DNA of 64,000 bases from Mizuhopecten yessoensis (GCF_002113885.1 NW_018406970.1:1734022-1798021); one strand, 5' to 3'; shown: positions 2,903 to 44,547, numbered from the stretch's first letter. The notes: a model not told the origin generated them from the letters alone. Numbers and translations are program-made.

Positions 2903-5900
2903 TCACATCATACAAACAGAACATGGCAACGTTTTTCCGTCCTCATACGGGGGACAAGGCAAGGATCCACATTTGGACAATACGGCAAAGAACACTCTAC
3001 CGTCATCATTCGTGTTCCCACCCCCTAATACCGCCTGTGGGTGCTCGTCTACACACAGGTACTCGGAGGCTGCTCCTAACCTTGGATTTCCCGCGGTCAG
3101 GAGACCATGGAAAGCCTCTGTCCATCCCGGGTAGCACGTGGCTCGGCCGGGAACCATGGTGATGACAGAATGGACCGTGTTCCTGCACACTGCGCATGAC
3201 ACGTCTTCGTTCAAGTTTGGCATACCAAACATGCCTGGATCTTCATATTCCGCGCCATAGACAAATGCTGGGTCACGTGCAGCTTTGTCTTTACTGGACC
3301 CCCACACTGGTTCTCGAGGCATGCACAGGGTGTTGGCTGCACCGCCGGGGGATGTATAGAAAGAACCGCCTGCAAACCCTGTCAAAATGTTCCGTACCGT
3401 CAGGAAAATATCCCCAAAGGCGTGATTGACAAAAATCTATTTTGAATGTAGCCTCGTCTACTCCGGAAACAATGCAAATACATCGGGGGGAAAAGGTTAT
3501 AATACACTGCTTACACCGCTTGCAAAGTGAAGACCTATTAGAAGGCGGGGGTTAACAAGTTACAGATGTATTGGGGGAAGTGTTCATGCACATAGCTTAA
3601 CAAGGAACAGACCAATTGGGAAAAGGTTCATGCTCAACGCTAAACAAGGTACAGGCTATTTCTGGACCGTTTCCTGCTCATCGCTAAACAAGATACAGAC
3701 CTTTTGGGGGTAAAGGTTCATGCACATCGCTAAACAAGGTACATACCTATTGGGGGGAAAGGTTCATGCACATCGCTAAACAAGGTACATACCTATTGGG
3801 GGGAACGGTTCATGCACATCGCTCAACAAGGTACATACCTATTTGGGGGATAAGGTTCATGCCCATCGCTAAACAAGATACATAACTATTGGGGGAAAAG
3901 GTTCATGCGCATCGCTAAACAAAATACAGACCATTTGGGGAAAAGGTTCATGCACATCGCTAAACAAGATAAAGACCATTTGGGGAAAAGGTTCATGCAA
4001 ATCGCTAAACAAGGAACATACTTATTGGGGAAAAGATTAATGTACATCGCTAAACAAGATACAGACCATTTGGGGAAAAGGTTCATGCACATCGCTAAAC
4101 AAGATACAGACCATTTGGGGAAAAGGTTCATGCGCATCGCTAAACAAAATACAGACCATTTGTGGAAAAGGTTCATGCACATTACTAAACAAGGTACATA
4201 CCTATTGGGGGGAACGGTTCATGCACATCGCTAAACAAGATAAAGACCATTTGGGCAAAAGGTTCATGCAAATCGCTAAACAAGGAACATACTTATTGGG
4301 GAAAAGATTAATGTACATCGCTCAACAAGATACAGATCATTTGGGGAAAAGGTTCATGTACATCGCTCAACAAGGTACATACCTATTGGGGGAACGGTTC
4401 ATGCACATCGCTAAACAAGGTACATCCCTATTGGGGGAACGGTTCATGCACATCGCTAAACAATGCACAAAACTTTTGGGGGAAAAGGTTCATGCACATC
4501 GCTAAACAAGACAAAGACCATCTGGGGAAAAGGTTCATGCAAATCGCTAAACAAGGAACATACTTATTGGGGAAAAGGTTCATGTACATCGCTCAACAAG
4601 ATACAGACCATTTGGGGAAAAGGTTCATGCACATCGCTAAACAAGATACATACCTATTGGGGGGAAAGGTTCATGCACATCGCTAAACAAGATACAGACA
4701 TATTGGGGGGAAAGGTTCATGCACATCGCTAAACAAGGAACATACTTATTGGGGAAAAGGTTCATGCGCATCGCTAAACAAGATACATACCTATTGGGGA
4801 AAAGGTTCATGCGCATCGCTAAACAAGGTACATACCTATTGGGGGAACGGTTCATGCACATCGCTAAACAAGGAACATACTTATTGGGGTAAAGGTTCAT
4901 GTACATCGCTAAACAAGGTACATACCTATTGGGGGAAAAGGTTCATGCGCATCGCTAAACAAGATACAGACCATTTGGGGAAAAGGTTCATGCACATTAC
5001 TAAACAAGGTACATACCTATTGGGGAAAAGGTTTATACACATCGCTAAACAAGGTACATACCTATTGGGGGGAAAGGTTCATGCACATCGCTAAACAAGG
5101 AACATACTTATTGGGAAAAAGGTTTATGCTCATCGCTGAACAAGATTCATACTTATTGGGGGAAATGGTTCAAGTTCATCGCCAAACAAGGTACAGACCT
5201 ATTTGGGGAAAGGTTCTAATACATTGCTAAACAAGGTACATACCCATCGGGAGGAAAGGTTTATGGTTATCCCTGAACAAGATAATACTTATTGGGGGAA
5301 ATGGTTCATGTTCATCGCTAAACAAGATACAGACCTATTGGGGGGAAAGGTTTCTTGCACATCGCTTAACAAGATACATATTTATTGGGGAAAAGGTTTA
5401 TGCTCATCGCTGAACAAGTAAGATACATACTTATTGGGGGAAATGGTTCATGTTCATCGCCAAACAAAGTTCAGACCTATTTGGGGAAAGGTTCTAAAAC
5501 ACCGCTAAACAAGGTACATACCTATGGGGGAAAAGGTTTATGCTCATCGCTGAACAAGGTACATCCTTATTGGGGGAAATGGTTCAAGTTCATCGCTAAA
5601 CAAGGTACATACCTATTGGGGAAAAGGTTTATGCTCATCGCTGAACAAGGTACATACTTATTGGGGGAAATGGTTCAAGTTCATCGCTAAACAAGGTACA
5701 TACCTATTTTGGGAAAGGTTCTAAAACATCGCTAAACAAGGTACATACCTATTGGGGAAAAGGTTTATGCTCATCGCTGAACAAGATACATACTTATTGG
5801 GGGAAATGGTTCAAGTTCATCGCTAAACAAGGTACATACCCACTGGGCACAAAAGGTGCATTGTTCATCGCAGACATGGTAGAGTTCATCATAAAACAAG

Positions 5901-7225
5901 GTAGATTATGGAAGCAATGATACAGACATATACTGACAATATCGCATGCTTTTGGCCTTTTCTGTGATACTGAACTGAAGGGTTTTAATTATTAATTTTT
6001 AATTAACTTCTCACTCTCGACTGTTCTGTTTTTACCAGAGTAAACGAGCTGTGTGTCATTGCCTGCAGGACAGTCCTTCCTTCCCCATCTGGTGTACACC
6101 ACGCCTTTACACCCTGTAGCACGCAAGCAGACAGAAAGTTTACATAATAAAGTGAGTGAAGACAATTCCGGAACTAAATGAAATTAACTGTCTTTTTAAC
6201 AACCTGCACGTGCTTTCTCTAAATAATTGTGTGTTTTTGTTCATGTAAGTATCCACAAATCATTATACATGCACATATACCCTATATAAGTGCTTAATGC
6301 TCAACATCCAATTTACTAGGTATTTGTACCAACACCGAAATAACTAGGTACATTTTAGGAATAGTGACCGTAAACGGAGTTATGTGCAATTTTGGAAAAT
6401 GCATAAATCGATTTTGGAATATACAGAAATAATTAAACACCTTGTAAGATCTGATTGTGAGCCATTGGTAGTTTTAGAGAGAGACAGACAGACAGAGAGA
6501 TGTTGCTCGGTGAACGTTTTTGAAAGCACAGCAGTGGAACATTTGACATTAATAACTCATGAATGTTATGTTGTATTCTTAACTCTGAACGGATTTTAGA
6601 TTTGAACTTTATAAGAATTAATTTTGAATCGTTCAAGAAGTATTGATAATGCAATGTTATTGTTCATTCTCGATACAAATTATGTTGTTCTGTGTCTATG
6701 ATATATACTACGATGAAGAACTGTCAAGTTTAAACCAATGAAGTATACTTGGAATAAAAGTGGAATTGTGTAAGAGTCGGATACCAAATGCACTTTGTTC
6801 CTGTTGGGTTACACAATGTACTTACTTTCCTGTGCCATTTTCATGATAACGGATTGTTGATTGGTGACGGTCTGTTGTAGGGTGGAAATCGTCTGCTGTT
6901 GACTGGACATTGCCTGCTGTTGACTGGACATTGCCTGCTGTTGACTGGACATTGCCTGCTGTTGATCGCTTATGTTTTGTTGCTGATTAGTGACGGTCTG
7001 TTGGAGGGTAGATACGGTCTGTTGGAGGGTAGATACGGTCTGTTGGAAAGTGGACACGGTCTGTTCTTGGTTTCCAGCCTTGACTCGTAGCTCCTGTAGC
7101 TCCGACTGGAGATGGGTGAGTTGCTGGGACACATACGCGGGGTCATTCAGCAAAATACGTTTTTCGGAGGCGAGAGTTAAGACGAAAAGGCACACAATTC
7201 CAGCAATGACTGTTTGGCCCGCCAT
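2903..7225 (-). CDS. Paralogue A1: secreted coiled-coil + short-chain collagen C4-like (spongin NC1-like) domain protein, 317 aa, 3 exons
   Basis: Exons 7225-6826 (400 nt), 6113-6036 (78 nt), 3378-2903 (476 nt); all introns GT-AG, phase 1; joined frame open (954 nt). Hydrophobic N-terminus MAGQTVIAGIVCLFVLTLA, QQTVSTL heptads, motifs VYTRWGRKDCP, GGAANTLCMP, YGAEY, CAVC, CYPGWT, CGSLPCPPY. Confidence 0.9.
3570..5900. repeat. ~45-46-bp minisatellite in intron 2 of A1
   Basis: Unit GGTTCATGCACATCGCTAAACAAGGTACATACCTATTGGGGGAAAA, about 50 copies. Confidence 0.95.
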
Positions 7226-8829: not shown

Positions 8830-11397
8830 GGTGTCACCCTAGGCACCCGTCTTTATGTAACCCTGGCTGCTGTGTCTCCCTAGGCACCCATCCTCATATG
8901 ACCCTGGCTGTTGTGTCTCTCTAACTACACGTCCTCAAATGAACCTGGCTGTTGTGTCTCCCTAGGCACCCGTCCTCATATAACCCTGGCTGTTGTGTCT
9001 CCCTAGGCATCCGTCCTCATATGACCCTGGCTGTTGTGTCTCCTAGGAACCCATCCTCATATGACCCTGGCTGTTGTGTCTCTCTAGCTACACGTCCTCA
9101 AATGAACCGGGCTGTTGTGTCTCCCTAGGCTCCCGTCCTCATATAACCCTGGCTGTTGTGTCTTCCTAGGCACCCGTCCTCAAATGACCGTGTCTCCCTA
9201 GGCACCCGTCCTTATATGACTCTGGCTGTTTTGTCTCCCTAGGCACCCGTCCTCATATGACTCTGGTTGTTGTGTCTCCTTAGGCACCCGTCCTCATATG
9301 AGTTGCGTCTCCCTAGGCACCCGTTCTCATATGACCCTGGCTGTTGTGTCTCTCTAACTACACGTCCTCAAATGAACCTGGCTGTTGTGTCTCCCTAGGC
9401 ACCCGTCCTCATATGACCGTGTCTCCCTAGGCACCCGTCCTCATATGCCCGTGTCTCCCTAGGCACCCGTCCTCATATGCCCGTGTCTCCCTAGGCACCC
9501 GTCCTCATATGGCCTTGGCTGTTGTGTCTCCCTAGGCACCCGTCCTCATATAACCCTGGCTGTTGTGTCTTCCTAGGCACCCGTCCTCAAATGACCGTGT
9601 CTCCCTAGGCACCCGTCCTCATATGACTCTGGTTGTTGTGTCTCTTTACGCACCCGTCCTCATATGACACTGGCTGTTGTGTCTCCCTATGCACCCGTCC
9701 TCATATAACCCTGGCTGTTGTGTCTCCCTAGGCACCCGTCCTCAAATGACCGTGTCTCCCTAGGCACCCGTCCTTATATGACTCTGGCTGTTTTGTCTCC
9801 CTAGGCACCCGTCCTCATATGACTCTGGTTGTTGTGTCTCTTTAGGCACCCGTCCTCATATGACACTGGCTGTTGTGTCTCCCTAAGCAACCGTCCTCAT
9901 ATGACCCTCGCTTGTGTGTCACACTAAACAACCGTGCTCATATGTCCCTGGCTGTTGTGTCTCCCTAAGCAACCGTCCTCATATGACCCTCGCTTGTGTG
10001 TCACACTAAACAACCGTGCTCATATGTCCCTGGCTGTTGTGTCTCCCTAAGCAACCGTCCTCATATAACCCTGTCTGTTGTGTCTCCCTAGGACCCCATC
10101 CTCATATGACCCTGGCTGTTGTGTCTCCCTAAGCAACCGTCCTCATATAACCCTGTCTGTTGTGTCTCCCTAGGACCCCATCCTCATATGACCCTGGCTG
10201 TTGTGTCTCCCTAGGCACCCGTCCTCATATGACCGTGTCTCCCTAGCCACCCGTCCTCAAAAGGCTGTTGTGTCTCCCTAGGCACCCGTCCTCATATGAC
10301 CCTGGCTGTTGTGTCTCCCTAGGCATCCGTCCTAATATGCCCCTGGCTGTTGTGTCTCCCTAGGCATCCGTCCTCATATGACCATGGCTGTTGTGTCTCC
10401 CTAGGCATCCGTCCTAATATGCCCCTGGCTGTTGTGTCTCCCTAGGCATCCGTCCTCATATGACACTGGCTGTTGTGTCTCTCTAACCACACGTCCTCAT
10501 ATGACCCTGGCTGTTGTGTCTCCCTAGGCACCCGTCCTAATATGCCCCTGGCTGTTGTGTGGCTGTTGTGTCTCTCTACCCACACGTCCTCATATGACCA
10601 TGGCTGTTGTGTCTCCGTAGGCATCCGTCCTAATATGACCCTGGCTGATGTGTCTCTCTAGGCATCCGTCCTAATATGACCCTGGCTGTTGTGTCTCTCT
10701 ACCCACACGTCCTCATATGACCTTGGCTGTTGTGTCTCCCTAGGCACCCGTCCTCATATGGCCTTGGCTGTTATGTCTCCCTAGGCACCCGTCCTCATAT
10801 GGCCTTGGCTGTTGTGTCTCCCTAAGCAACCGTCATCATATGACCCTGGCTGTTGTGTGGCTGTTGTGTCTCCCTAGGCATCCGTCCTTATACGTCCCTG
10901 GCTGTTGAGTCTCCCTAGGCATACGTCCTCTCATGACCCTGGCTGTTGTGTATCTCTAACCACACGTCCTCATATGACCCTGGCTGATGTGTCTCCCTAA
11001 GCAACCGTCCTCATATGGCCCGGGCTGTTGTGTCTCCCTAAGCAACCGTCCTCATATGACCCTGGCTGTTGTGTCTCCCTAGGCATCCGTCCTTATATGT
11101 CCCTGGCTGTTGAGTCTCCCTAGGCATCCGTCCTCTCATGACCCTGGCTGTTGTGTCTCTCTAACCACACGTCCTCATATGACCCTGGCTGTTGTGTCTC
11201 CTTAGGCACCCGTCCTCATATGACACTGGCTGTTATGTCTCCCGTCCTCATATGGCCTTGGCTGTTGTGTCTCCCTAAGCAACCGTCCTCATATGACCCT
11301 GGCTAGTATGTCTCCCTAAGCACCCGTCCTCATATGGCCTTGGCTGTTGTGTCTCCATAGGCACCCGTCCTCATACATGTATGACCCTGGCTGTTGC
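8830..11397. repeat. 41-bp minisatellite (60+ units) inside a SINE spanning ~8628-11435
   Basis: Unit CCCTAGGCACCCGTCCTCATATGACCCTGGCTGTTGTGTCT; the array runs into GAGGACGTTAAAACTC(AAAC)n. Confidence 0.95.
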
Positions 11398-11477
11398 GAG
11401 GACGTTAAAACTCAAACAAACAAACAAACAAACACATTATTCAAAAGAGAAATAAATAGTGATGAGCAATATTTATT

Positions 11478-14322
11478 TTAGATCATACACACAACACAGG
11501 ACAAAACCTTGTTATCTTCGTATGGTGGACATGGAAGGGATCCACACTTCGACCAGACAGCGAACACAGATATCCCTATGTCGTTTCTGCTTCCTCCTCC
11601 GGCGGTCGCTTCAGGATGTTCGTCAGTACACTGGTACTGGGTTGCGGAAGGGTCAGGCGGATAACCAGCTGTAAGGATGCCGCGGTAGGCCTCGGTCCAC
11701 CCCGGATAGCAAATGGTCCGCCCGGGTATCATCGTAATTATTGAGTATGCCGTGTTTCTACATACAGCGCAAGGCACGTCTTCGTCGTAGTTTGGCATTC
11801 CGAAGATAGTTGTGTCTTGATATTCCGCACCGAAGAGATAGGCTTTCCCATGAAGAGGCGTATTCTTGTGTGGACCCCAGATCGGATCCGACGGCATACA
11901 GAGGGCATTGGCGGCTCCTCCTTGGTCATGGTAGTTTGAACCACCAACGTATCCTAAAATTATAACAGAAATAAAGTAAGGTTTTAAATAATTTGAGCAA
12001 ATTTGTAAATGTATATCCCTAGCTTTTAGGATAGTGTTATACAAGCTTTCCATTGATGACGCTTGGTATAGTCATACTTGCCAATATGCATGAGCATCTC
12101 AGATTTGTCATCGTTATCGACCAGAAACGAATTAATAATCAATGTTAGGTAGTTACATTAATTATGTATAAGAGTATCACGTAGGGAACCATTCTTAACC
12201 TAATAATGTCTTTACCAAACTGCTTGAAATCGAACCATACTTATGACGTGCCTCCATGTGTTATGTATGTGTGCATGTGTGTATGTGTGCCAGAGACAGG
12301 GTAAGGCAGTGTAATTAGGGTAATTATGGTAATCACGATGCCCGTCCGTCCGTCAGCACTTTCGACCAAACTTTCTTAAATTTCACCTGGTGATATACTG
12401 TGATGTGCAGATGTGCATTAGGGATTTTAATAATTCCTAGGGTCAAGGTCACTGTTTCTAAAAATAGAATTGGGGATATACTGTCAGAAGAACACAATAT
12501 AAGGCTGTAAAAGAAGGCCAATTTTTCTGAAATTTCTCATGATGATACACTGTAATTATAATGCAGATGTCAAGGTCGCTGTTACCAAAAATAAGGCCCT
12601 TACAGAAGGCCAAATTTTACAATATGGTACATGTGAAATAGGCCTTTAAACAGGTTCGAAGCTCAACGTTGCCGTTACTTTAAAATAGATCAGGGCAAAT
12701 AATGTCAAAATATTATTGTAAATGATCCTTTCTGAACAGTCAATGATCACTTTTGCTTGGTGCTTATTCGGGAGATACACTGTCAGACATACAGCGGGGC
12801 CCTTGCTGACCTGTCAGTATTCTAGTTCTGTAGCGGGTTCCAAAATAGGTCGCTTCTTAGGATACATGGAGTGGGGGAACAGCAGGTGTATACTGTTCTT
12901 GATCTCCGACCTGCAGGGGTGGCCTGGGGACAGAACACATTGCCTTCCTCACATGAGCGAACGCTCAACACTAAAGCAAAAATGAGGCATTGCCAAGCAA
13001 TGCGCTATGAAACAAAAGGTAGTTAGAAGTAGAGAGAAATATGAAGATCCTAAATATTAAAATGAGTGCAGCAGATTTATTTTGGTCGCTTTTGTGTCCC
13101 CAAGTAGAGGGCACAAAAGCAATTCCCTAATGCTGCAAGGGGCTCCCACATTAGCTGCCTCTTACTATCATGCAGTGGATAACAGCTAGCAGGTGTATTC
13201 TTTTCTCGAGCCACGACCTGCAGGGGTGCGGGTTAACGAGGACTGTCACTAATATTGTCAGTTTGTTTACAAGAGACGTAAACGATAATGTAATTAAAAA
13301 CGGTGCTCGGATTTATTTTCAAGCCAGACATCATTAGAATATTGCGCCAATGAATCCCGTTGATTCAGTAAAATTTTCCTCGTTTTAATTTAAAATATAA
13401 TAAACTGAAAATTCAATGGTTTTCCGGTGAAAACCATATAAATATCACCGATATATTCACGTATTCTGCCATGCTCGTGAAATACATATGGTATGCAATT
13501 AGAAAAACATTAGACATCACCGATATCTTGAATGCATACATAAAAACACACAAACGTTTACCATAATAAACGAGTTGTGTGTCACTGTCCTTGGGACAAC
13601 TCTTCCTTCCCCATCTGGTGTACACCACGCCTTTACCACCTAAACAAACACACAAAATCTTTGCATAAACATTGAGTTTGTTAATAAATATATAGTATAT
13701 ATACAACACACTACTTTTTGGGAAATGTGCATAAAATACGATATTAATCATTTACAGTGTACTCTATTCTACGCAGAGGTCAGAAATTAGATATTTCTGC
13801 ACAGTATGCAGAAATCTTTAATGGAGTAAATTGATGTCAATTTAGGATAAATATTTAAAAGCCGATATTTGTGTACCTAAGACTGTCTGACTGTGATCCA
13901 CATTGTGTAAGTGGAATTGTATGATAGAAAACATTGTACTTACTTTCCTGTGCTATGTTCGTAAGGACGGAATGCTGGTTTGAAACGGTTTGTTGAAGGG
14001 TAGAAATCGTCTGCTGTTGACTGCTTATGTTTTGTTGCTGATTGTTAACGGTCTGTTGGAGGGTAGATACGGTCTGTTGCAGAGTGGACACGGTCTGCTG
14101 TTGACTGCCTATGTTTTGTTGCTGATTAGTAACGTTCTGTTGAAGAGAAGACACGGTCTGCTCTTGGTTTCCAGCCTTAACTCGTAGCTCCTGTAGCTCC
14201 GACTGGAGATGGGTGAGTTGCTGGGACACATACGCCGGATCATTTAGCAAAATACGTTTTTCATCGGCGAGAGTTAAGACGAAAAGGCACACAATTCCTG
14301 CAATGACTGTCTGGCCCGCCAT
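11478..14322 (-). CDS. Paralogue B1: secreted coiled-coil + C4-like domain protein, 310 aa
   Basis: Exons 14322-13944 (379 nt), 13639-13562 (78 nt), 11953-11478 (476 nt); GT-AG, phase 1; open 933 nt; same motifs as A1. Confidence 0.9.
12845..13245 (-). mobile_element. Degenerate tRNA-SINE fragments in intron 2 of B1 (also ~23935-24340 in B2)
   Basis: Minus-strand A/B-box-like head GCTTTAGTGTTGAGCGTTCG...GTTCTGTCCCC; body similar to the 8628 SINE. Confidence 0.45.
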
Positions 14323-15576: not shown

Positions 15577-18500
15577 TCACATCATACAAACAGAACATGA
15601 CAACGTTTTTCCGTCCTCGTACGGGGGACAAGGCAAGGCTCCACATTTTGAATACACGGCATAGAACAGTCTACCGTTATCGTCCGTGTTCCCACCCCTA
15701 ATACCGCCTGTGGGTGCTCGTCTACACACAGGTACTCGGAGGCTGCTGAATGCGTTGGACTTCCCGCGGTCAGGAGACCATGAAAAGCCTCTGTCCATCC
15801 CGGGTAGCACGTGGCTCGGCCGGGAACCATGGTGATGACAGAATGGACTGTGTTCTTGCACACTGCGCATGGCACGTCTTCGTTCAAGTTTGGCATACCA
15901 AACATGCCTGGATCTTCATATTCCGCGCCATAGACATATGTTTGGACACGTGCAGCTTTGTCTTTCCTGGGCCCCACACTGGTTCTGGAGGCATGCACAA
16001 GGTGTCGGCTGCACCGCCGGGGGAAGTATAGTGAGAAACGCCAGCAAACCCTGTCAAAATGATCCGTACCGTATGGAAAAAATATCACCCTTGAATGTAG
16101 CCGTGTCTTCTATTGAAACAATGTAAATACATCGTGGGAAAAGGTTATAACAAATCGCTAAACAAGGTAAAGACCTATGGCGGGGGGCGGGTATCCACAT
16201 CACTCAATAAAGTACGAATTTATTGGGAGGAAAGGTTCATGCGTATCTTTTTAGTGAAAAAAGTTCATACACACCGCTAAACAAGCTACAGAACATTTGA
16301 GGGGGGTGGTGGAGGGAGATGCTTATCGCTAAACAAAATACGGTCATATGGGGGGAAGTTCATGCACATTACTTAACAAGGTACAGGCCATTTGGGAGAA
16401 AAGGTTCATGCACATCGCTAAACAAGACACATACCTATTGGGGGGAAAAGGTTCATGCACATCGCTAAACAATATACATACCTTTTGGGGAAAAGGTTAA
16501 TGCACATCGCTAAATGAGATACATACCTAATGGGGAAAAGGTTCATGCACATCGCTAAACAATAAACATACCTATTGGGGGAAAAGGTTAATGCACATCG
16601 CTAAACAAGATACATACCTATTTGGGGGAAAAGTTTCATGCACATCGCTAAACAAGATGCATACATATTGGGGGAAAAGGTTTATGTACATAGTTAAATA
16701 AGATACAGATCATTTTTGCAAAGGTTCATGCTCATCGCTAAACAAGGTACAGACCTATTTGGGGGAAAAGGTTCATGCACATCGCTAAATGAGATACATA
16801 CCTAATGGGGAAAAGGTTCATGCACATCGCTAAACAATAAACATACCTATTGGGGGAAAAGGTTAATGCACATCGCTAAACAATATAATACCTTTTGGGG
16901 AAAAGGTTCATGCACATCGCTAAAGGAGATACATACCTAATGGGGAAAAGGTTCATGCACATCGCTAAACAATAAACATACCTATTGGGGGAAAAGGTTA
17001 ATGCACATCGCTAAACAAGATACATACCTATTTAGGGGAAAAGGTTCATGCACATCGCTAAACAAGATGCATACATATTGGGGAAAAGGTTTATGCACAT
17101 CGTTAAATAAGATACAGATCATTTTTGCAAAGGTTCATGCTCATCGCTAAACAAGGTATAGACCTATTTGGGGGGAAAAGGTTCATGCACATCGCTAAAC
17201 AAGATACATACATATTGGGGGAAAAGGTTTATGCACATCGCTAAATAAGAAACAGATCATTTTGGGAAAGGTTCATGCTCATCGCTAAACAAGATGTTCA
17301 TCGCTAAGCGAGATACCGATCTATTGGGGAAATATGTTTCTTGCACATCGCTAAACAAGGTACAGACTTATTTGGGAAAATGTTCTTATACATCGCTAAA
17401 CAAGATACATACCTATTGGGGGGATAAGGTTCATGTCTATAGCTAAACAAGATATAGATCATTTTTGGAAAGGTTCATGCTCATCGCTAAATAAGGTACA
17501 GACTTATTTGGGAAAATGTTCTAATACATCGCTAAACAAGGTACAGACCTATTAGGCGGAAAGTAAAGAACATTTGGGAAAAGATTTATGCGCAACGCTA
17601 AGCAAGGTACATACCTATTGGGCGGGAAAAGTTCATGCACATCGCTAAAGAAGGTACAGACCTATTTTTTTGGAGGGGGGGGGGTAAAGGTGGGGTAAAG
17701 GTGGGGTAAAGGTGGGGTAAAGGTTCATGCACATCGCTAAACAAGGTTCAGATCATTTTGGTAAAGGTTCATGCTCATCGCTAAACAAGGTACAGACCAT
17801 TTTGGGAAAAGGTTGATGCACATCGCTTAACAAGAAACATACCTATTGGAAGGAAAAGGTTTATGCACATCGCTAAACAAGGTACATATGTATTGTGCGT
17901 GAAAGGTTCATGCACATCGTTAAACAAAGTACATACCTATTGGAGGGGGGGGGGGAAGGTTCATGCACATCGCTTAACAAGATACATACCTATTGGGGGG
18001 ATAAGGTTCATGCATATCGCTAAACAAGGTACATACCTATTAGGGGGATAAGGTTCATGCACATCGCTAAACTAGATACAGTTCATTTTTGGAAAGGTTC
18101 ATGCTCATCGCTAAACAAGGTACAGACCATTTTGGGAAAGGTTCATGCTCATCGCTAAACAAGATGTTCATCGCTAAGCGAGATAGCGACCTATTGGGGA
18201 AATGGGTTTCTTGCACATCCCTAAACAAGGTACAGACTTATTTGGGAAAACGTTTTAATTCGTCGCTAAACAAGGTACAGACCTATTAGGCGGAAAGTAA
18301 AGAACATTTTTGAAAGGTTCATGCACATCGCTAAACAAGGTACAGATGATTTTCGGAAAAGATTCATGCACATCGCTAAACAAGATATATACCTATAGGA
18401 GGGGGGGGGGCTAAAGGTTCATACACATCACTAAACAAGGTACAGATCATTTTTGGAAAGGTTCATGCTCATCGCTAAACAAGGTACAGATCATTTATGG

Positions 18501-25330: not shown

Positions 25331-26461
25331 GATGTCAGTAGCGGTATGAGACGCGCAAAAGCAACGCTACGGTATCAGTGCAGGAAAACACAGGTGGTGT
25401 TCTCTTATCAATTAGCTCTAAACAAGGCTACTGACATCCTAGTGCTGTACTTTATATATGCAAACATAAGCCAATAGTTATCATTTTATGAATATGAAAA
25501 GATAGATGGAGAACACTAGCCCCCTATGAATTATAAGGGACGCGATTGTAAAGCAATTACTATGTATTGTTGTGATAAAACAAAAACTGGTACATAATTA
25601 TGATCCAAACATGGGATTTTGACTGTGAATTCGCTGACAAAATGTTTGTTAGTAATTGTCAGAAAAATAATAAAACAATATAATGTAACTTTATAAAGTA
25701 ATTCAATAATAAAATACTAACTCCCTCCTCATGATGGAATAGTAACCTTTTTGACAATAAAGTTAACGATTTTGATAAACACCTTTTACATCCATGAAAA
25801 ATATTATAGCATAGTCTGTTGAAGGAGATTGTTTGGACCCGACCATGAGGCCCTAAGTGTAAGTCAGGGTCTTAATTGTCATGCCATCAAACTGCAATCA
25901 CATTTTAATTATTACAACAAAGTTGGATTTATATGCTCCTGAAAGTAAACAAAATGCAGTCAAACCTGTATTAAGAGGCCACCCAAGGGACCGGCAGAAA
26001 TTGGCCGCTTAAGAAAGGTGGCTGCTAAAACCAGGTTCACCCGAAAATCACAACCAAGTTTTCATACATCCACGGGTTATAATGACATTTCCCCGGCAAT
26101 ATAGGCTGCTATGTTATTTTGAATTTTTCTCTCTTCATCAACAGGGGTACGATTTCATACTTGAATATAAATGCATAATCAATAAAATACAAAGGCGTCT
26201 GAGAAACTGGTCATATCGTGGAATTGGTATGACTTCGCTGCGTTAAGTTTTGGTGTTTGATGACACGATCCTATTCTGATTGATGACGATTTTAGTTGAA
26301 GGGCTCGTAGATAGCTGTATCTTCCTACTTAGGGAAAGACAGAACAAAGTTTTCTCCGCGTAAAATAAGCAATACCATTTAGTGTGCAAGGAAGCATGCT
26401 ATTCGGAAGAAGACGAACTACAGAACGAATGACTTTAACAAAGTAGCAAGCATTGCTTTAT

Positions 26462-29400
26462 TCACATCATACAAACAGAACATGACAACGTTTTTCCGTC
26501 TTCGTACGGGGGACAAGGCAAGGATCCACATTTTGAATATACGGCATAGAACAATTTTCCATTATCATTCGTGTTCCCACCCCCTAATACCGCCTGTGGG
26601 TGCTCGTCTACACACAGGTACTCGGAGGCTGCTGATTCCGCTGGATTTCCCGCTGTAAGGAGACCATGAAAAGCCTCTGTCCATCCCGGGTAGCACGTGG
26701 CTCGGCCGGGAACCATGGTGATGACAGAATGGACCGTGTTCCTGCACACTGTGCATGGCACGTCTTCGCTCAAGTTTGGCATACCAAACATGCCTGTATC
26801 TTCATATTCGGCGCCATATACATATGATTGGATATGTGCAGCTTTGTTTTTACTGGGCCCCCAAACTGGTTCTGGAGGCATGCACAAGGTGTCGGCTGCA
26901 CCGCCGGGGGATGAATAGTAAGAACCGCCAGCAAACCCTGTCAAAATGTAGCCGTGTCTACTATGGAAACAATGTAAATACATCAGAGGAAAGGTTATAA
27001 TACATCGCTAAACAAGGTAAAGACCTAGGGGGAGGGGGGGGGCTATGCACATCACTCAACAAAGTACGGATTTATTGGAAGGAAAGGTTCATGCGCATTG
27101 CTAAACAATGTACATATCTATTGGGGGAAACGGTTCATGCACATCATTTAGTGAAAAAGGTTCATACACACCGCCAAACAAGGTACATACCTATTGGGGG
27201 GAAAAGGTTCATGCACATCGCTAAACAAGATACATACCTATTGGGGAAAGGGTTCATGCACGTCGCTAAACAAGATACATACCTATTGGGGAAAAGGTTC
27301 ATGCACATCGCTAAACAAGTTACATACCTATTGAGGGAAATGTTCATGCACATCGCTAAACAAGGTACATAGCTATTGGGGGAAAGGGTTTATGCATATC
27401 GCTAAACAAGATAATACCTATTGGGGGAGGGGAGGGGATGTTCATGTACATCGTTTAACAAGATGCATAGCTATTGGGGGAAAGGGTTTATGCATATCGA
27501 TAAACAAGATAATACCTATTGGGGGAAAGGGTTTATGCACATCGCTAAACAAGATAATACTTATTGTGGGAAAAGGTTCATGCACATCGCTAAACAAGAT
27601 AATACTTATTGTGGGAAAGGTTCATGCACATCGCTAAACAAGATAATACTTATTGTGGGAAAGGTTCATGCACATCGCTAAACAAGATACATACCTATTG
27701 GGGGAAAAGGTTCATGCACATCGCTAAACAAGATAATACTTATTGTGGGAAAAGGTTCATGCACATCGCTAAACAAGGTGCATACCTATTGGGCGGAAAA
27801 GGTTCATGCACATCGCTAAACAAGGTACAGATCATTTTTGGAAAGGTTCATGCTCATCGCTAAACAAGATGTTCATCGCTAAGCAAGATAACGACCTATT
27901 GGGGAAAAGGTTCATGCACATCGCTAAACAAGGCACAGACCTATTGTCAGGAAAGTGTCATGCATATCGCTACACAAGGTACAGAGGGATTTGGGGAAAT
28001 GTTCTAATACATAGCTAAACAAGATACATACCTATTGAGGAAAAGGTTCATGCACATCGCTAAACAAGATACATACTTATTGGGAGAACGGGTTTATGTA
28101 TATCGCTAAACAAGATACATACCTATTGGGGGAAAGGTTCATGCACATCGCTAAACAAGATAATACTTATTGGGGGAAAGGGTTTATGTATATCGCTTAA
28201 CAAGATACATACCTATTGGGGAACAGGTTCATGTACATCGCTAAACAAGATACATACTTATTAGGGGAAAAGGTTTATGCACATCGCTAAACAAGGTACA
28301 TACCTATTGGGGGAAAAGGTTCATGCACATCGCTTAACAAGATACATAGCTATTGGGGGAAAGGGTTTATGCATATCGCTAAACAAGATAATACTTATTG
28401 TGGGAAAAGGTTCATGCACATCGCTTAACAAGATACATAGCTATTGGGGGAAAGGGTTTATGCATATCGCTAAACAAGACAATACTTATTGTGGGAAAAG
28501 GTTCATGCGCATCGCTAAACAAGGTACATACCTATTGGGCGGAAAAGGTTCATGCACATCACTAAACAAGGTACAGATCATTTTTGGAAAGGTTCATGCA
28601 CATCGCTAAACAAGGTACAGACCATTTTGGGAAAGGTTCATGCTCATCGCTAAACAAGATGTTCATCGCTAAGCAAGATACCGACATATTGGGGAAATAG
28701 GTTTCTTGCACATCGCTTAACAAGGTACAGACCTATTGGCAGGAAAGTGTCATGCACATCGCTACACAAGGTACAGAGATATTTGGGGAAATGTTCTAAT
28801 ACATCGATAAGCAAGGTACAGACATATTGGGCGGAAAAAGTTCATGTACATCGCACACATGGTAGAGCTCATCAGAAAACAAGGTAAATGATGGAAGCAA
28901 AATACAAGAAATGTGTTGATTCTGTATACATACGGACATATACAGACAATATCACATACTCTGGGGGTTTTCTGTGATACTGATTTAAGGGTTTTAATTA
29001 TTATTTTTTAATTAACTTCTCATTCGACTGTTCTGTGTTTACCAGAGTAAACGAGCTGTGTGTCATTGCCTGCAGGGCAGTCCTTCCTTCCCCATCTGCT
29101 GTACACCACGCCTTTACCACCTGTAGCACGCAAGCAGACAGAAAGTTGTCATAATAAAGTTAGTGAAGACAATTCCGGAACTAATTGATATTAACTGTCT
29201 TTTTAACAACCTGCACGTGCTTTCTCTAAATAATTGTGTGTTTTTGTTCATGTAAGTATCCACAAATCATTATATTTGCACATATACAATTAATGCTCAA
29301 CATCCAATTTACTAGGTATTTGTACCAACACCGAAATAACTAGGTACATTTTAGGAATAGTGTGCGTAAACGGAGTTATGTGCAATTTTTAGAAAATCCA

Positions 29401-30088
29401 TAAATCGATTTTGGAGTATACAGAAATAATAAAACACCTTGTTAGATCTGATTGTGAGCCATTGTTAGTTTTAGAGAGCGACAGACAGACAGAGAGATGT
29501 TGCTCGGTGAACGTTTTTGAAAGCACAGCAGTGGAACATTTGACATTAATAACTCATGAATGTTATGTTGTACTCCTTACTCTTAACCGAAATTTAGATT
29601 TGAACTTTATGAGAATAGAATAGTCCATCATTTTTGAATCGTTCAAGAAGTATTGATAATGCAATGTTATTGTTCATTCTCGATACAAATTATGTTGTTC
29701 TGTGTCTATGATATATACTACGACGAAGAAATGTCAAGTTTAAACCAATGAAGTATACTTGGAATAAAAGTGGAATTGTGTAAGAGTCGGATACCAAATG
29801 CACTTTCTTCCTGTTGGGTTACACGATGTACTTACTTTCCTGTGCCATTTTCATGATAACAGATTGTTGATTGGTGACGGTCTGTTGGAGGTCAGATACG
29901 GTCTGTTGAAGAGTGGTCACGGTCTGCTCTTGGTTTCCAGCCTTGACTCGTAGCTCCTGTAGCTCCGACTGTAGATGGGTGAGTTGCTGGGACACATACG
30001 CGGGGTCATTTAGCAAAATACGTTTTTCGGAGGCGAGAGTTAAGACGAAAAGGCACACAATTCCAGCAATGACTGTCTGGCCCGCCAT
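26462..30088 (-). CDS. Paralogue A3: secreted coiled-coil + C4-like domain protein, 268 aa
   Basis: Exons 30088-29836 (253 nt), 29120-29043 (78 nt), 26937-26462 (476 nt); GT-AG; open 807 nt. Confidence 0.9.
26990..28885. repeat. Same ~45-bp minisatellite in intron 2 of A3
   Basis: Same unit, ~1.9 kb. Confidence 0.95.
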
Positions 30089-32294: not shown

Positions 32295-35200
32295 GGGCCT
32301 GTTTCCAGTAATGTTAATTCTCCATAGGAGCCTGCCCCCGTATAATTTCTTATCTAGCTCAACTACTGTTTTTTTCTTTTCCGAAGAATAATTTTACACC
32401 TTTCCGACACCCAGATTTCATAATTTCAGTGAAAATGTATTTTTATAAAGTTGTCAATTTCAGCATCAAAGACATAAGTTCGTAAATAAAAGAAGGTTAT
32501 CTCGAAATTGTAATTCGCAACATAGTATAAATTTCTTTTGATAAATATTTCCAAAACATCGTGTTTATTCATAAAACATAAAAAAAAATATTTTCGGATG
32601 AAAATGCACTTGCAGAGACACAATTATGAAGAAAAATGCCATAAAATTGCAATTTTCTCCCGTTATATAGTTTTGGATGCAAATTTCCATCAGAAAATCG
32701 GATAGAGCTTTACTTGTTTCATATGTGTACCAAAAATCAGCTAATTCCATGTGGTGGAACGTTCTCATATCGCCGCCTGAATGTGGTTGTAAATTGAAAG
32801 AAAAGGGGAAATGAGTAACAACCTTGTCTGAAACCCTATTATATAGCTTATTATATACAAACTTTTATATTGAATATCAGAGCGGATATTTTCATGACAG
32901 TTTTATGATGTGTAACGACTAAATAAACAGTATCGATATAAAGATTTACACTGAGGACACCCTGATACATGAATACTGTTCTATCTCAAGTTGTCCTCTT
33001 CTGAATTTTCTGATCGTGTGGCCTTGTACATTTATCCGTATCTTCTTGTCTTTGTCTATACGTTTACGGAATCATTGACTCGACGCTAGCTATTCTTGTC
33101 TCACTTTCCTTGTTTTATTGTCCCATCTCCAAAGCGTTGTGGCTCTGTCAGGGTTGGGACCCTGACTTGTCTCACTTTCTTTGTGCCTGCCGACCACGCC
33201 ACATCGAATAGATAGATTATCCATATGAAATACTTTATTTTGTTCTAAGTAATCAATCAATTCTGCGCTTCTTGGAGGTATTGAATGTGATTTATTATAT
33301 TGTCTTGTTATTTTGTGTAATTAGTTGTTCGTTATTTATCACACATTTTCGCATAATTGTACCAAACTACTAAGTATTAGCTGTTTACAGCAATCATCGG
33401 TGGCTTGCTATTTTGTTACTTTATCGACGCTTCATAAACCAATCGTTATTGTTTCAAGATGGAGGGTAAATGTGTTGGAGAAGGGTGTCAAGTATACTTC
33501 AAGAAACGTAGTGGCAATAAGAACAGAAGTGCACGCAATGTAAATAGTCCACAATATAAATGGCTCCTAGATACGCTGGTGCAACAAGGATTGATGTCAG
33601 CAAAGGAACAAGCACTTATTTGCCAGAAGTGCTACATGAAGTATCTTCGGAACAAAAATCAGCCTGAACCTGAACCCGAGCAGAACCAGGAAATAGAGGA
33701 AGAAGACGACTCCCCGTCCCATATCCTGCCGTTGCTGACCCTTCATGATCTTTTGAATGGATCATCTTCACACAAAAAATGCTGTCTCTGTCTTGTTACC
33801 TTTGCAAGAAATGGAACAAAATCATCAGTCTTACCAAAACGTGCAAGACATCACCTGATCTATTCACACAAACTGTGGTGTCCCACCTCATCCCGCGTCT
33901 GCTCCATTCACCTTATTGGTAACGACTTAGATCCGTCTACAGAGGTTGTCCTTGATGGTAGAGGTTCCTTGGAATCTCAGTTACCATCAAAATCGTCCGA
34001 AATCATTAATGACCTCCTAGAGGTGTCGCACGTCCTTTCACAGAACCAGTCTGCGTTTACAATAAGCTTTTCTTCTCTTGATGACTCGGCATGCATGGCC
34101 TGGACAGGTTGGTCCAAAGATCAGTTCCTCGAAATCCACTCGCACTGTTCCCCATATCTTTCATCTGGTATATATACCAAGACTACACACGATGCTCTAT
34201 TACTGTTCTGGGTAAAACTGAAAACCGACATTTCCTGGAGTCAGTGTTCTTCTCTTTTTGGAATTTCCAAGTCAAGTGTGTCCAAAACTTTCCACTCCAT
34301 AGTACAGGCATTAGACACATCGATAGTCCCACAATTTCTAGGTCCGGATCACTTGACAAGAGAACAGTTGCTCGGGCACAATACTGTCTTTTCAGAAGCA
34401 TTTTTTGGAGATAAAGCCACTGCCATATTAGATGGCACCTATATTTATATCCAGAAAAGCTCCGACCACAAGCTCCAGAGAATGTCCTACTGTGGCCAGA
34501 AGAAGAGAAACTATCTCAAATTCATGAGCATCGCCTTACCAGATGGCTACATTCTGGACACAGTAGGACCATTCACTGGCAGCGAAAATGATGCTACAAT
34601 TACAAAAAAAGTCATGGACAAGCTAGTTACTTGGCTACAACCAGACGACAACGTTGTCGTTGACCGAGGTTTTAGAGATGTCCTACCAGTTCTCGAAGCC
34701 TCTGGCCTCAATGCTAGCATGCCGTCATACCTGAAACCCGGTCAAAGTCAACATTCTGACGTCCAAGCAAATCTTGACAGAACTATCACCAAATCGAGGT
34801 GGATTGTGGAATCCTATCATGGTCGTCTGAAACACTGGACGTTCTTCCGAACGCAATTGGTGTCTAACAGCTTTATCAATGTCATCGAGGCTTTGCTTCG
34901 AACCGTCACAGCCTGTCTGAATGGTATTAGAGGACCGATCTACCAGAGATCTCCAGAGAGAGATGCCAAAGATAGGCTAATGGCTGAACGTATGAAGGAC
35001 CGTTTGACAACACCGAATGGTTTAGCTCAGAGAGTCAAGACAGATCCGGATCTATCTAGACGGGCAAGGTCCGAGTTTGTCAAGATGGATGCATCTTCCG
35101 TACTGTTTCCCCGTCTCGATCTTGATTACTTGAGAACCATTACGTGTGGAACGTATCAGATATCTCTGGCTCCTGGTTACATCGCCGAACATTTAAGTGA

Positions 35201-36366
35201 TGACGGAGACTATGAGGTGTGGCTTTACCAGCACTCCCCAGACCTTCTCCGATGTCAAATACATTCTCGACACAAAAGCCAAACGAAATATAACGTTTGG
35301 ATACGGTTCACCGTTTCACCCGATGTTGAGGCCCCAATAAAGGACTACTACTGCCAGTGCCCAGTTGGAGAGAGAACGATGGGAATGTGTGCGCACATCT
35401 CCAGTATCTTGTACTACCTTGGGTATTACAGGACGCTGGAAAACCCTCGACCATTACAACCACAGGTAAAGAAATTCCGACAAAACTTGAAATAGTTTTC
35501 CATGCGGCAACGGAGTGCATATGTCGAAAGTATGTTTGGGGCTCGATATGAAAGATCCCCGTTACCATGTGACTAACCAAACTTATAAATATAGGTATTA
35601 TACAATCGCCCGTAGCTATGAACACTCCCGTAAATGCGAAAACCAACCAAAATCATAAGGAACACGTTTTGTTTGTTGTTCTGTCTATTTGTCAGCCAAT
35701 GTCTTCAACCACGGGGACTTGTGAAGTAGCCATCTTGGATTTTTTTTATGAAAAAGTGTTTCTCTCACTTTTTTTCATATCTGTGTACATATTCTCAACA
35801 TACCGAGCAAATACTCTCGTTTTTTTGTTAATTATCTAAAGAAAGTCGAAAATCGGCAATTCAACCATAGGCTAATTCAACCCAACATTTGAAAATGTTC
35901 CACCACTTACATTTTGATGATTTTTCCTCTCATCAATAGCATATTACGTACTGTTTAATAGGATAAAAATTGGTTTGCATCCAACGCCCATAAAAGGGTG
36001 TATTCTCTAAAAAACACAGTTTTTGTGTCTAAAATGTTATCATCGAAAATGGCATTTTTGAGATTGTTTCTTCCATAAAACAGCCAAATGGCGCGATGGA
36101 AACATGATTTTTTGTCACAATCATGCCATGAATGTATTCTTTACGGTGACCATCATTTGATTAGATTTTCATTAATATTTTACATAACATGCACATTTTA
36201 TCAACACTTAGACAGCTTCTGAAAGGTACAACTTTGAGGAGCCATAAAAAACAAACCAAGTGACCTAAATCTTTATACTTTATAGATTTGTGACCACAAC
36301 GGCATGGGCAATGCACCACCAACAGGAAATTTGAATCAGAGAAGGGGCCGTTTTGGAAACCGGCCC
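32295..36366 (+). mobile_element. Full-length autonomous PHIS-type DNA transposon (4072 bp)
   Basis: 13-bp TIRs GGGCCTGTTTCCA (32295-32307) and TGGAAACCGGCCC (36354-36366), 12/13 match; flanked by AAA on the left and TTT on the right; subterminal inverted motif GTGGTGGAAC (32751) / GTTCCACCAC (~35897); contains the intact transposase. Confidence 0.82.
33459..35495 (+). CDS. DDE transposase of PIF/Harbinger-ISL2EU-Spy (PHIS) type with C-terminal SWIM zinc finger, 678 aa
   Basis: Intronless ORF; helix-turn-helix-like segment (SWSQCSSLFGISKSSVSKTF); catalytic-type motifs ILDGTYIYIQK, ENDATI, VVDRGFRD, RWIVESYHGRLK; SWIM-like CQCPVGERTMGMCAH; N-terminal CxxC pairs. Confidence 0.88.
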   Translation: MEGKCVGEGCQVYFKKRSGNKNRSARNVNSPQYKWLLDTLVQQGLMSAKEQALICQKCYMKYLRNKNQPEPEPEQNQEIEEEDDSPSHILPLLTLHDLLNGSSSHKKCCLCLVTFARNGTKSSVLPKRARHHLIYSHKLWCPTSSRVCSIHLIGNDLDPSTEVVLDGRGSLESQLPSKSSEIINDLLEVSHVLSQNQSAFTISFSSLDDSACMAWTGWSKDQFLEIHSHCSPYLSSGIYTKTTHDALLLFWVKLKTDISWSQCSSLFGISKSSVSKTFHSIVQALDTSIVPQFLGPDHLTREQLLGHNTVFSEAFFGDKATAILDGTYIYIQKSSDHKLQRMSYCGQKKRNYLKFMSIALPDGYILDTVGPFTGSENDATITKKVMDKLVTWLQPDDNVVVDRGFRDVLPVLEASGLNASMPSYLKPGQSQHSDVQANLDRTITKSRWIVESYHGRLKHWTFFRTQLVSNSFINVIEALLRTVTACLNGIRGPIYQRSPERDAKDRLMAERMKDRLTTPNGLAQRVKTDPDLSRRARSEFVKMDASSVLFPRLDLDYLRTITCGTYQISLAPGYIAEHLSDDGDYEVWLYQHSPDLLRCQIHSRHKSQTKYNVWIRFTVSPDVEAPIKDYYCQCPVGERTMGMCAHISSILYYLGYYRTLENPRPLQPQVKKFRQNLK

Positions 36367-36559
36367 TTTACAAGCGGAAACCTATTGATCATGTTGCAGT
36401 ATTGTAGTATTCTCGAGTTTCACGTTGATGAATCAGGGTAAGCCATGCCCCGCTATATCTGTTTTTCTGCTAATATTTTAAATGTCTTATCCACAAAAAT
36501 TAAACTCCTCCATTTCCTTACTTCTGCTGAATCTGGAATTTCGAAAATTGATGGTGAGT

Positions 36560-42120: not shown

Positions 42121-44547
42121 AGTACGGTTTTCACAGACGTGACGGGGCCAGACAAATGTATTTTGGCCATATTGTTTTTAAAGTCTTCACGACTTCTTCT
42201 ATGGAACTATGAAACCCCGCGCCATGGGCTGGTTTACAACATTCTCAGGTGGTGGTGAGTCAACGTTATACAAATGGAGGGGCCGACACCCCCTCGCAAG
42301 GGTTGAGAGGCAGGACCAAAAGTTGAGAAACCCAACATACAACCTTATATACAATTGCTCAGTTTAAAGATAAGAATACACATGAGCTACCAGGATTTAC
42401 CCCATGGTCCTGCCCAACCCCAGGGGACTTAGTTCATGGTTCATAACATAAAAATGTTTGGTATCACCATCCCATAACCATTTATACAATTGCTTGAACA
42501 CATCATGCTATTAGACTTTGCCCCGCCTGTTTGGACACTATGACCATATCTAAAATGCTGAACATGAAAGGACGAATACAGATATGCTACCAAGATTTGC
42601 CTTGGCGTCTGCCCCCTCCCCCTTCCCTTTCGAAACATTGCCCCATGGTCATAACATGGAAGAAGTTGTGATCTCCTGTAACAATTACTGAGCATGATGA
42701 GTTGGATACACATATATGCTTCCATTATTAGCTCTGTGGTCAGTCACCACCCCTAAGAACTTACTCTTTTTTATGAGAATATTTTCCAAGGTTATTTAAA
42801 TATCCAGGTGATCGCTACAGGCTCTATTGTATTGCAATCAAATAACTGCATTTTCAAATCATCTCCTAAATTAATAAATTGCCAGTTCACATATGCTACA
42901 ACACAATCATTTCGTCAGAAGTGGACCTCAACTCTCACACATATTTCACCTTGGCTAGTCAGTGTAGTGATGGTTGACTGTTGGCTGTCGATTTTCTGTT
43001 GTTGGGCCCCCACCTTAACCTGGAGCTCTTGTAGCTGTGACTGAATGCGGACCAGTTCCTGTGATACATACGTCGGATCGGTCATCAAAATCCGTCGGTC
43101 TTTGGCGGACGTCGGACAGCAGAGGTACACAACGAAAAATGCGATGAAATAGCGATACATTGTGGTAGAATCGGGCAGTAAGAATGAGTCTCAGAATAGA
43201 TAGGTAGGGTTTGTAAATAGGGCTCCTGTCGTCACAGATAAGGCGAGTCCGACAGAGATAACGAATACTTTTACTATATGACATATATTACGACCCATGC
43301 TCCTGAACACTTTTGAATTAATATTACATACATAACGTAATCATTAATCATTTACACGTTAAATAAAGGTAAGAAGCTGTGAAACTCTAATGAGGGAAAT
43401 CACAATCACAAACGCCACCCTACCCCTACCCTTCCCCCTCCCGCACCCCCTCCCCCCATTTTTTTTTTTAATAATATGAAACAAAAATCATAAAAATAAA
43501 ACACATAAATAAATTAAACTTATAAAAGAAAAAAAGAAAAGGAAAATCGATAAATAAACACCATATGTATTCGCAAATGATGCCATTCTCAGTCAGAGTT
43601 CAATCTACAGCGTCTGTCTTGCCAACATGTTTCGTTCACATCTAGATTGCAATTCAAAACATCCCTTCCTCCAACATTAACTATATAATAATAAAAACAA
43701 AATAAAATAAAAAGTCATAAATAAAAAACACTATATGCATTCGCAAATGATGCCATTTGAATTCGCCCTAGACAAAAATTTATCAGCTGATCAGAAGTCA
43801 TGACGGCCATCTTGAATCCCATATCAATGAAGCTGGCCCAAATAGTCCTCGATTTAGATTGTACATTTTGTAATTATCTTTGCCTCAGTTAGAGGCCAAT
43901 CTCTGCTGATAAAATGTTTCGCTCATCACATTTAGTTTACATTACAAAACATTCCTGCTCCGACATTAACAGTAGTCAAGATCATTTACATCATATTTAC
44001 TGAGTTAATCATCGGATAAAATCGAAACAGTTTAAAGTTTGTAATACAATTGTGACAGAAGGTCCCCGGGGGCATTTTTCATGAATCATTACCGCCATTT
44101 ACCTGTATTTTTTTGTGTGACTGTGGCCAAAATAAAGTGATATTAAGAGAAATCGACATAAAATCAGGTGATAATAAAAGAATTGAATTTCATAGATTAT
44201 ATAGCAGGAAAAACGGTGCATCAGATCAACATGATAATAACCGAAAAGTGACATTAACGGACGTGATATTAGGTGAAATGTAATGTAGTTGTTTTGTCCG
44301 GGAAGAGAGTCAAATATGAATACATAAAAAACATAAGAGACGAGTTATTTAAATTACGTTGAGACAGAATACAATTTAATTAAAATTATATCTTCACATC
44401 GCTCCCGTTTACTGATACGTCGCGTTGAAACGGGAGCGATGTGAAGATATAATTTTAATTTGATTGGACAGAATACTGCTTGAAAAGGTGTAACTAACGG
44501 GGAACACCAAAAATGCAAACCATGCACGTTACTTATTGTAGCAACAT

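Follow-up and report, generated by a model that had tools for sequence, protein, structure and literature searches.

The stretch of DNA considered here, 64,000 nucleotides from Mizuhopecten yessoensis (GCF_002113885.1 NW_018406970.1:1734022-1798021; "the window" denotes this whole stretch), contains a tandem array of genes for proteins with a hydrophobic leader, a predicted coiled-coil stalk and a cysteine-rich globular head. By tblastn with the head and leader exons we find six copies, all on the minus strand within 2903-43160, and read along that strand they follow each other as C, A3, B2, A2, B1, A1. Three coding exons make up each copy, where exon 1 encodes the leader and the stalk, exon 2 (78 nt) the start of the head with the GKGVVYTRWGRKDCP segment, and exon 3 (476 nt) the remaining head, and both introns are in phase 1 with GT..AG ends in 6/6 copies. 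The head comprises 185 residues with 10 cysteines, one from exon 2 and nine from exon 3. A first-pass annotation of the window had described six paralogues with identical exon phases and 10 conserved head cysteines, which is borne out by our exon models and translations, and had pointed to four short variable stretches of the head, referred to below as patches. The copies are arranged as follows:

2903..7225, minus strand: gene A1, intact, 317 aa, P0008 (LOC110453347); exons 7225-6826, 6113-6036 and 3378-2903; patches (exon 3) 3364-3350, 3298-3263, 3085-3071 and 3007-2978
11478..14322, minus strand: gene B1, intact, 310 aa, P0001; exons 14322-13944, 13639-13562 and 11953-11478; patches 11939-11925, 11873-11838, 11660-11646 and 11582-11553
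15577..20771, minus strand: copy A2, a pseudogene; exon homologues 20771-20436, 19848-19780 and 16050-15577
22723..25330, minus strand: gene B2, intact, 289 aa, transcribed, P0002; exons 25330-25015, 24731-24654 and 23198-22723; patches 23184-23170, 23118-23083, 22905-22891 and 22827-22798
26462..30088, minus strand: gene A3, intact, 268 aa, transcribed, P0004; exons 30088-29836, 29120-29043 and 26937-26462; patches 26923-26909, 26857-26822, 26644-26630 and 26566-26537
39433..43160, minus strand: copy C, of a conserved type, interrupted in this assembly by a single in-frame stop; exons 43160-42950, 41643-41566 and 39908-39433
6826-7225, 13944-14322, 25015-25330, 29836-30088 and 42950-43160: stalk exons

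Four of the six copies (A1, B1, B2 and A3) are intact, and their translations are identical to the RefSeq proteins P0008, P0001, P0002 and P0004. RefSeq names these proteins either 'short-chain collagen C4-like', as for B1 and B2, or 'uncharacterized protein'. The intact genes were searched via these identical database proteins, and for C and A2 the analysis was confined to single exons and local scripts. Thus, the proposed family of six stands as a count of copies but not as a count of working genes, as A2 is a pseudogene and C has an in-frame stop. All three exons of A2 are damaged: exon 1 has a stop, exon 2 a TAC to TAA change along with a deletion of 9 nt, and exon 3 two frameshifts. The first donor is weakened to GTAAAT. 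The stop in C lies in exon 3 (39730-39750), where the sequence reads FG*TDL versus FGMADL, FGMADF or FGMTDY in the orthologues, and relative to these, four consecutive bases are changed at the conserved Met codon. C is the orthologue of Pecten maximus P0003 (85% identity). In Pecten maximus, exon 2 of the A-type gene contains a frame change (L001 14279-14351), which the RefSeq model reads through in the wrong frame. Considering this frame change and the stop in C, the single-copy relatives may perhaps be damaged or mis-assembled too.

The AlphaFold2 model of full-length A3 has a hydrophobic N-terminal helix and a continuous helix from 29 to 85, followed by a beta-rich head, which supports the layout of signal peptide, coiled coil and globular head suggested at first pass. 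The hydrophobic leader would serve as a signal peptide, and the proteins would then be secreted. The stalk is built of Q-rich heptads of the VSTLQQT type, in which V and L occupy positions a and d. Exon 1 is 400 nt long in A1, 379 in B1, 316 in B2, 253 in A3 and 211 in C; as the differences are multiples of 21 nt, the stalks differ by whole heptads and the register of the coiled coil is always kept. The exception is the pseudogene A2, with an exon 1 of 336 nt. No Gly-X-Y run is found in any of the six copies, confirming that a collagen helix is absent. A1, which has the longest stalk, reads RCK at the start of exon 2 (6108-6113), at the junction of stalk and head, versus SGK or GGQ in the other copies. 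This gives A1 an eleventh, unpaired cysteine that could form an inter-chain disulfide.

Modeled alone with AlphaFold2, the head reaches a predicted local distance difference test score (pLDDT) of 93.7. The top 34 Foldseek hits of this model are all collagen IV NC1. Comparing the head with NC1 in VIA-align gave a Z of 7.0 over 151 of 185 residues at 4.5 Å and, in a further match, a Z of 5.3, and in an unbiased pass through 48,161 representative chains the sole chain with a Z of at least 2 was an NC1 single-chain trimer (Z 6.9). The root-mean-square deviation of the head-NC1 matches is 4.5-4.6 Å. A Z of about 7 is moderate, and the match of the modeled head to NC1 counts because nothing else scores. 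Taken together, the Foldseek hits and the two highest Z values support the C4/NC1-like head of the first-pass annotation. The fold match is good only against single-chain NC1 trimers (8txn_D, 6wku and 6mpx_A) and poor against a single NC1 chain (Z about 3), which points to a different, non-swapped arrangement from that of NC1. The two halves of the head are homologous repeats (profile-profile comparison with hhalign: probability 97.5%, E 6e-12).

Sequence searches do not recover this relation. The Pfam C4 model (PF01413) does not match the head even at E up to 10, and NC1 chains were not found in the PDB by phmmer with a single sequence or by a 72-sequence profile. As all three are silent, the relation between the head and NC1 is seen by fold comparison only. 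Going by the model, the head is a spongin-type variant of the collagen IV NC1 fold. Collagen IV NC1 domains assemble into trimers and hexamers, and are characterized by domain-swapped hairpins and a sulfilimine cross-link. The scallop heads share with collagen IV NC1 (PDB 1LI1, 1M3D, 6MPX, 8TXN) the two homologous half-domains and a C-terminal C-x-x-C ending, but have no HSQ motif, no long triple helix and no match to the C4 model.

The spongin short-chain collagens (SSCC), associated with the names of Exposito (1991) and Aouacheria (2006), have reportedly been described as a family since 2006. A spongin is defined by a short collagen domain and a spongin-type NC1 head, and the head has 10 cysteines, seven shared with collagen IV and three spongin-specific, and no HSQ motif (Fidler 2017, PMC5395295). 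The copies in the window have the 10 cysteines, and no HSQ is visible in their translations. Nine of these cysteines are invariant or nearly so across 72 family heads, as seen in the alignment summary. The N-terminal Gly-X-Y domain of the SSCC, on the other hand, is replaced by the predicted continuous helix, so that the scallop proteins have a heptad coiled coil of at least 57 residues where the collagenous domain would be. The scallop heads are 42-46% identical to those of amphioxus and Ptychodera proteins bearing 17-31 Gly-X-Y triplets, and for P0090 and P0098 (Branchiostoma) and P0192 (Ptychodera) the matches have E 1e-36 to 1e-29 at 43-46% identity, with 24-31 triplets. The family numbers 2264 clusters at 50% identity (E up to 1e-3). 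A collagen run, taken as at least 8 Gly-X-Y triplets, is present in only 8 of the 203 family proteins fetched, which indicates that the collagen-less form is common. The scallop genes are a collagen-less, coiled-coil variant of a known, already annotated family. We found no description of such a variant in the literature, Aouacheria 2006 lying outside that search.

Spongin-type heads are also carried, in tandem, by the choanoflagellate proteins P0060 and P0068 (Choanoeca perplexa and Bicosta minor). The Choanoeca perplexa protein is 3949 aa long with nine matched stretches, and that of Bicosta minor is 1601 aa long. One choanoflagellate head aligns with the scallop head along 181 residues at 33% identity (E 1e-27), and 8 of the 10 cysteines are kept in it. 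Pfam reports TNFR_c6 and a few other domains in these proteins, and no C4. The long metagenome proteins P0062 and P0201 resemble these tandem-head proteins. NC1 has been described as undetected in 22 choanoflagellate proteomes, and spongins as restricted to animals (bioRxiv 10.1101/2021.10.08.463732; PMC5560861). The similar heads in choanoflagellates suggest that the scaffold may predate animals, and transcriptome contamination is a possible alternative origin.

All patch strings quoted in the first-pass annotation are present in the translations of the window. However, the middle string of each set (VSHYTS, PRKDKAARVQTY, SPTHSA and DNGRLFYAVY) derives from the pseudogene A2 and not from a working gene. 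The observation that amino-acid changes pile up in the same places holds among the intact genes: A1 and A3 differ at 27 head sites and B1 and B2 at 13, and five of these sites are common to both pairs (hypergeometric P = 0.026). The nucleotide differences between A1 and A3 are clumped (P = 0.0017), and codons 62 and 152 were double-changed independently in A1/A3 and in B1/B2 (P = 0.012). When the two half-domains are aligned with hhalign, patch 1 is paired with patch 3, and patch 2 with patch 4, so the four patches amount to two loops, each occurring once per half-domain. In the AlphaFold2 head model the patches lie in loops next to long strands. Compensated frameshifts can be rejected as the source of the runs of changed residues, since the nucleotide alignment displays clustered substitutions and no indels. 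Micro-conversion from a paralogue was likewise rejected, as there is no donor for the patch 2 and patch 3 motifs in the cluster or among the 203 family proteins, an incomplete sample.

The rates of change differ sharply between the patches and the rest of the head. For A1/A3 the ratio of non-synonymous to synonymous divergence (dN/dS) is 3.8 in the patches (22 non-synonymous and 2 synonymous changes), 0.18 in the rest of the head and 0.67 in the whole head, and for B1/B2 the corresponding values are 2.0, 0.34 and 0.59. In the C-type orthologues from four scallop genera, at a synonymous divergence of 0.5-0.8, dN/dS is 0.03-0.1 in the patches and about 0.06 in the rest of the head; the loops are thus strongly conserved there and not intrinsically free to vary. 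Between A and B, and between either of these and C, synonymous sites are saturated. The proportion of non-synonymous differences (pN) in the A patches, 0.30, is about 2.5 times the exon-wide synonymous proportion (pS; Fisher P = 0.002). Between A1 and A3, replacement divergence in the patches (0.30) is as large as that of either gene from the Pecten maximus orthologue (0.27-0.28), although A1 and A3 have a synonymous divergence six times lower, which marks the change as a burst that followed duplication. Furthermore, exon 3 of A1/A3 has diverged twice as much as intron 1 (P = 0.002). We rejected the possibility that old duplicates were homogenized everywhere except in the patches, because synonymous divergence in the patches is 0.07-0.09, as elsewhere, and far below the 0.5-0.8 of the orthologues. 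Synonymous changes did not cluster significantly with replacements (A, P = 0.10; B, P = 0.64); such clustering would have been a sign of a mosaic.

Codon models were fitted with our own implementation. The likelihood-ratio statistic (LRT) of M2a versus M1a was 17.8 with five taxa, 15.0 with four taxa and 16.2 with the two pairs alone, while the largest LRT among 30 data sets simulated under the null was 4.4. With the A1, A3, B1 and B2 tips as foreground, the branch-site test gave an LRT of 14.4 (p = 1.5e-4, omega 5), to which the pairs contribute unequally when taken separately (12.2 for the B pair and 3.6 for the A pair). As a control, the C-clade tips as foreground gave an LRT of 0. The sites picked were 61-63, 126-128 and 152, plus 72, 82 and 160. 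Other recent paralogue pairs give a mixed picture, with patch enrichment in the P0024/P0026 pair and in a Sinanodonta pair, but not in two further pairs named below.

RNA-derived contigs show that B2 and A3 are transcribed and that their splicing follows the gene models. In the B2 contigs of run X1, the exons meet exactly at the two modeled introns, with a word depth of 89-179, and exon 3 of A3 is present in the same run at a depth of 12-20, joined at 26938 to exon-2-like sequence. One A3-like RNA contig, from another run, contains a third version of patch 3, RLA, with A1-like synonymous neighbors; either a different animal carries this as an allele or a mosaic, or the assembler crossed over within the 66 identical bases between patches. 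In other bivalves, 'short-chain collagen C4(-like)' genes are among the abundant gill transcripts and are found in the gill proteome (PMC4581086, PMC5302490), and in Mytilus a 'short-chain collagen C4' gene is gill-enriched alongside lectins (PMC4581086). Genes with this annotation appear in differential-expression lists, and the literature mentions them at the level of annotation, without functional study.

A tandem duplication of an A-B unit is visible when the window is compared with itself. The syntenic place in Pecten maximus is occupied by one C-type and then one A-type gene, with nothing more of the cluster, which means that the array has expanded in the Mizuhopecten lineage. Together with the broken copies (A2, and C with its stop), this supports the birth-and-death evolution that had been proposed. 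The near-identical flanks described for the recent duplicates hold in places but not overall, as outside the coding sequence the copies differ by anything from 1.7% to 19%, with some parts unalignable. A1 is closest to A2 in the 5' flank (1.7%) and to A3 in the 3' flank, so the relationships of A1, A2 and A3 shift along the locus. Tandem repeats and a transposase gene are found within and between the copies:

3554..5847, unstranded: 45-bp minisatellite in intron 2 of A1, 50 copies (Tandem Repeats Finder)
16325-19507 and 27155-28864: 45-bp minisatellite in intron 2 of A2 and A3, with the same unit as in A1
8831..11375, unstranded: 41-bp G+C-rich tandem array adjoining B1 downstream, 64 copies, G+C about 0.5
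22233-22643: 41-bp array downstream of B2, 10 copies, with the unit of the B1 array
33459..35495, plus strand: transposase open reading frame (ORF) of 678 aa, outside the gene family, between C and A3 (Pfam DDE_Tnp_4 1.9e-17, HTH_Tnp_4 3.4e-7)

The minisatellite and the 41-bp arrays may have driven unequal exchange in the cluster. The transposase is Harbinger/PIF-like, having both the DDE_Tnp_4 and the HTH_Tnp_4 domain. Repeated elements are present in intron 2 of B2 (23800-24233) and in the spacer between B2 and A3 (25960-26200), with a word depth of up to 1877 in run X5 and many partial reads in RNA runs, and the element in intron 2 of B2 has an ORF at 23868-24428. Elsewhere in the window there is a tandem repeat with a unit of about 146 bp at the very start (1-962), a repetitive ORF with peptide units of about 25-26 aa (63373-63762) and a run of N (60786-61716).

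We favor, with somewhat better than even confidence, an interpretation in which Mizuhopecten yessoensis has a lineage-specific tandem array of collagen-less spongin-type genes whose products would present several heads at once. The stalk would oligomerize, probably as a trimer like the collagen helix in true spongins. After duplication of the A-B pair, the heads of both the A and the B pair have changed mainly in the two loops, one copy of each per half-domain. The loops could then represent a surface for binding. Episodic positive selection, acting atop relaxed constraint, would have retuned it once the genes had duplicated, with redundant copies (A2 and perhaps C) decaying meanwhile. The adaptive part of this, that the loops diversified under selection, is plausible, and we find the case for it about evenly balanced. 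The double hits at codons 62 and 152, the lack of a donor sequence and the pN at 2.5 times the synonymous level argue against a purely mutational explanation.

A considerable body of evidence nevertheless weighs against this interpretation, and much of it favors relaxed constraint without adaptation, where the loops drift, clustered mutations or short conversions inflate dN, and the array decays and builds no repertoire. We regard this as a real possibility, if not an even one. When the nine codons with at least two nucleotide differences are masked, the branch-site LRT drops to 0 with omega2 at 1, and 42% of foreground sites then fit neutrality. Codon-model tests of selection are known to give false positives where multi-nucleotide mutation occurs. 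Adjacent double mismatches are enriched 2-4 times in the introns and flanks of the same duplicates, which together with the four-base cluster behind the stop in C means that a multi-nucleotide mutation process acts here and inflates the codon tests. The locus is a recombination mosaic, which is a source of bias in site tests, and has minisatellites in or beside every gene. Pervasive selection across scallops is rejected by the nine-taxon comparison of M2a and M1a (LRT 0.5), and the variable sites fall in columns that are variable across the whole family (P about 2e-4). The elevated dN/dS anticipated for exon 3 is seen in the patches, where the ratio exceeds 1, and in the branch-site test, but not in the tree-wide site test or with the codons masked. 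Two of the six copies are broken, as drift would have it. The patches were furthermore defined after the fact, and within the patches alone the split between non-synonymous and synonymous changes is only marginal (A, P = 0.067; A+B, P = 0.027). Two other recent paralogue pairs of Mizuhopecten yessoensis, P0012/P0020 and P0013/P0018, show no patch enrichment, and in the raw reads of two deep RNA-seq runs, X21 and X24, there is no coverage of the exons, from which we conclude that expression is restricted. On the other hand, neutrality caps omega at 1, which is difficult to reconcile with the excess of pN over pS in the A patches. Drift also fits poorly with double hits at the same two codons in two independent pairs, with the strong conservation of the loops in the C orthologues, and with four intact genes that keep their frames, all cysteines and splice sites, at least two of them being expressed.

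Alternatively, the loops could serve in assembly, selecting partner chains or hetero-oligomers as NC1 does, and the proteins would then be building blocks of a matrix or mucus layer. In collagen IV it is the NC1 domain that governs how chains are selected and assembled (PMC5395295), and the scallop head has the NC1 fold in the model along with the two-lobed repeat. The match only to single-chain NC1 trimers suggests elements that are exchanged between NC1 chains, and heptad-exact differences in stalk length would disfavor mixed coiled coils. The gill transcript and proteome records of the annotated bivalve genes (PMC4581086, PMC5302490) would also be in keeping with such a role. However, spongin-type heads are reported to be without the domain-swap region of NC1 (PMC5395295), and we consider an assembly function rather unlikely. 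The first-pass annotation had instead suggested pattern-recognition or allorecognition molecules with the loops as a hypervariable ligand-binding site. Bivalve C1q-domain-containing (C1qDC) and fibrinogen-related (FREP) proteins offer the analogy here, as they have the same layout of signal peptide, coiled coil and globular head and form large, tandem-expanded families. The size of the spongin-type family, the focused and rapid change in the loops, the lineage-specific tandem expansion with pseudogenes, the further RLA version of patch 3 and the gill enrichment of the Mytilus gene together with lectins (PMC4581086) would all be in keeping with such a role. In contrast to the C1qDC and FREP families, for which binding and immune roles are documented, the scallop proteins have a head of unrelated fold, and Pfam finds no gC1q, FBG or C-type lectin domain in it. 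An assembler chimera could account for the RLA contig, the evidence for selection is fragile and the literature on the family is at the level of annotation. The immune interpretation, drawn by analogy, is in our opinion improbable, a little more so than one based on assembly.

Returning to the favored interpretation, of loops retuned as a binding surface after duplication, spongin-type proteins have been treated in the literature as short matrix collagens, and the role assigned to their heads is resemblance to NC1 only. The cluster described here shows that the head very often sits on a coiled coil, that it is internally duplicated, and that recent duplicates diverge in the same loops. The symmetry of the variable loop pairs, the heptad-exact stalk lengths and the contrast of A and B with their conserved neighbor C are new. 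The pattern of loop changes is a concrete proposal for where the heads bind partners, and the conserved C beside the diversifying A and B genes constitutes a natural experiment within one 40-kb array. One may speculate further, although we think it unlikely, that collagen-less heads on coiled coils represent an unrecognized multivalent binding family in bivalves, with symmetric loop pairs that are retuned after each duplication. If so, diversified recognition outside the cell would have a third structural solution in addition to the C1q and fibrinogen-type heads. Should the changes in the loops prove adaptive, they would provide a functional reading for a very large invertebrate family, one that numbers more than 2000 clusters at 50% identity.

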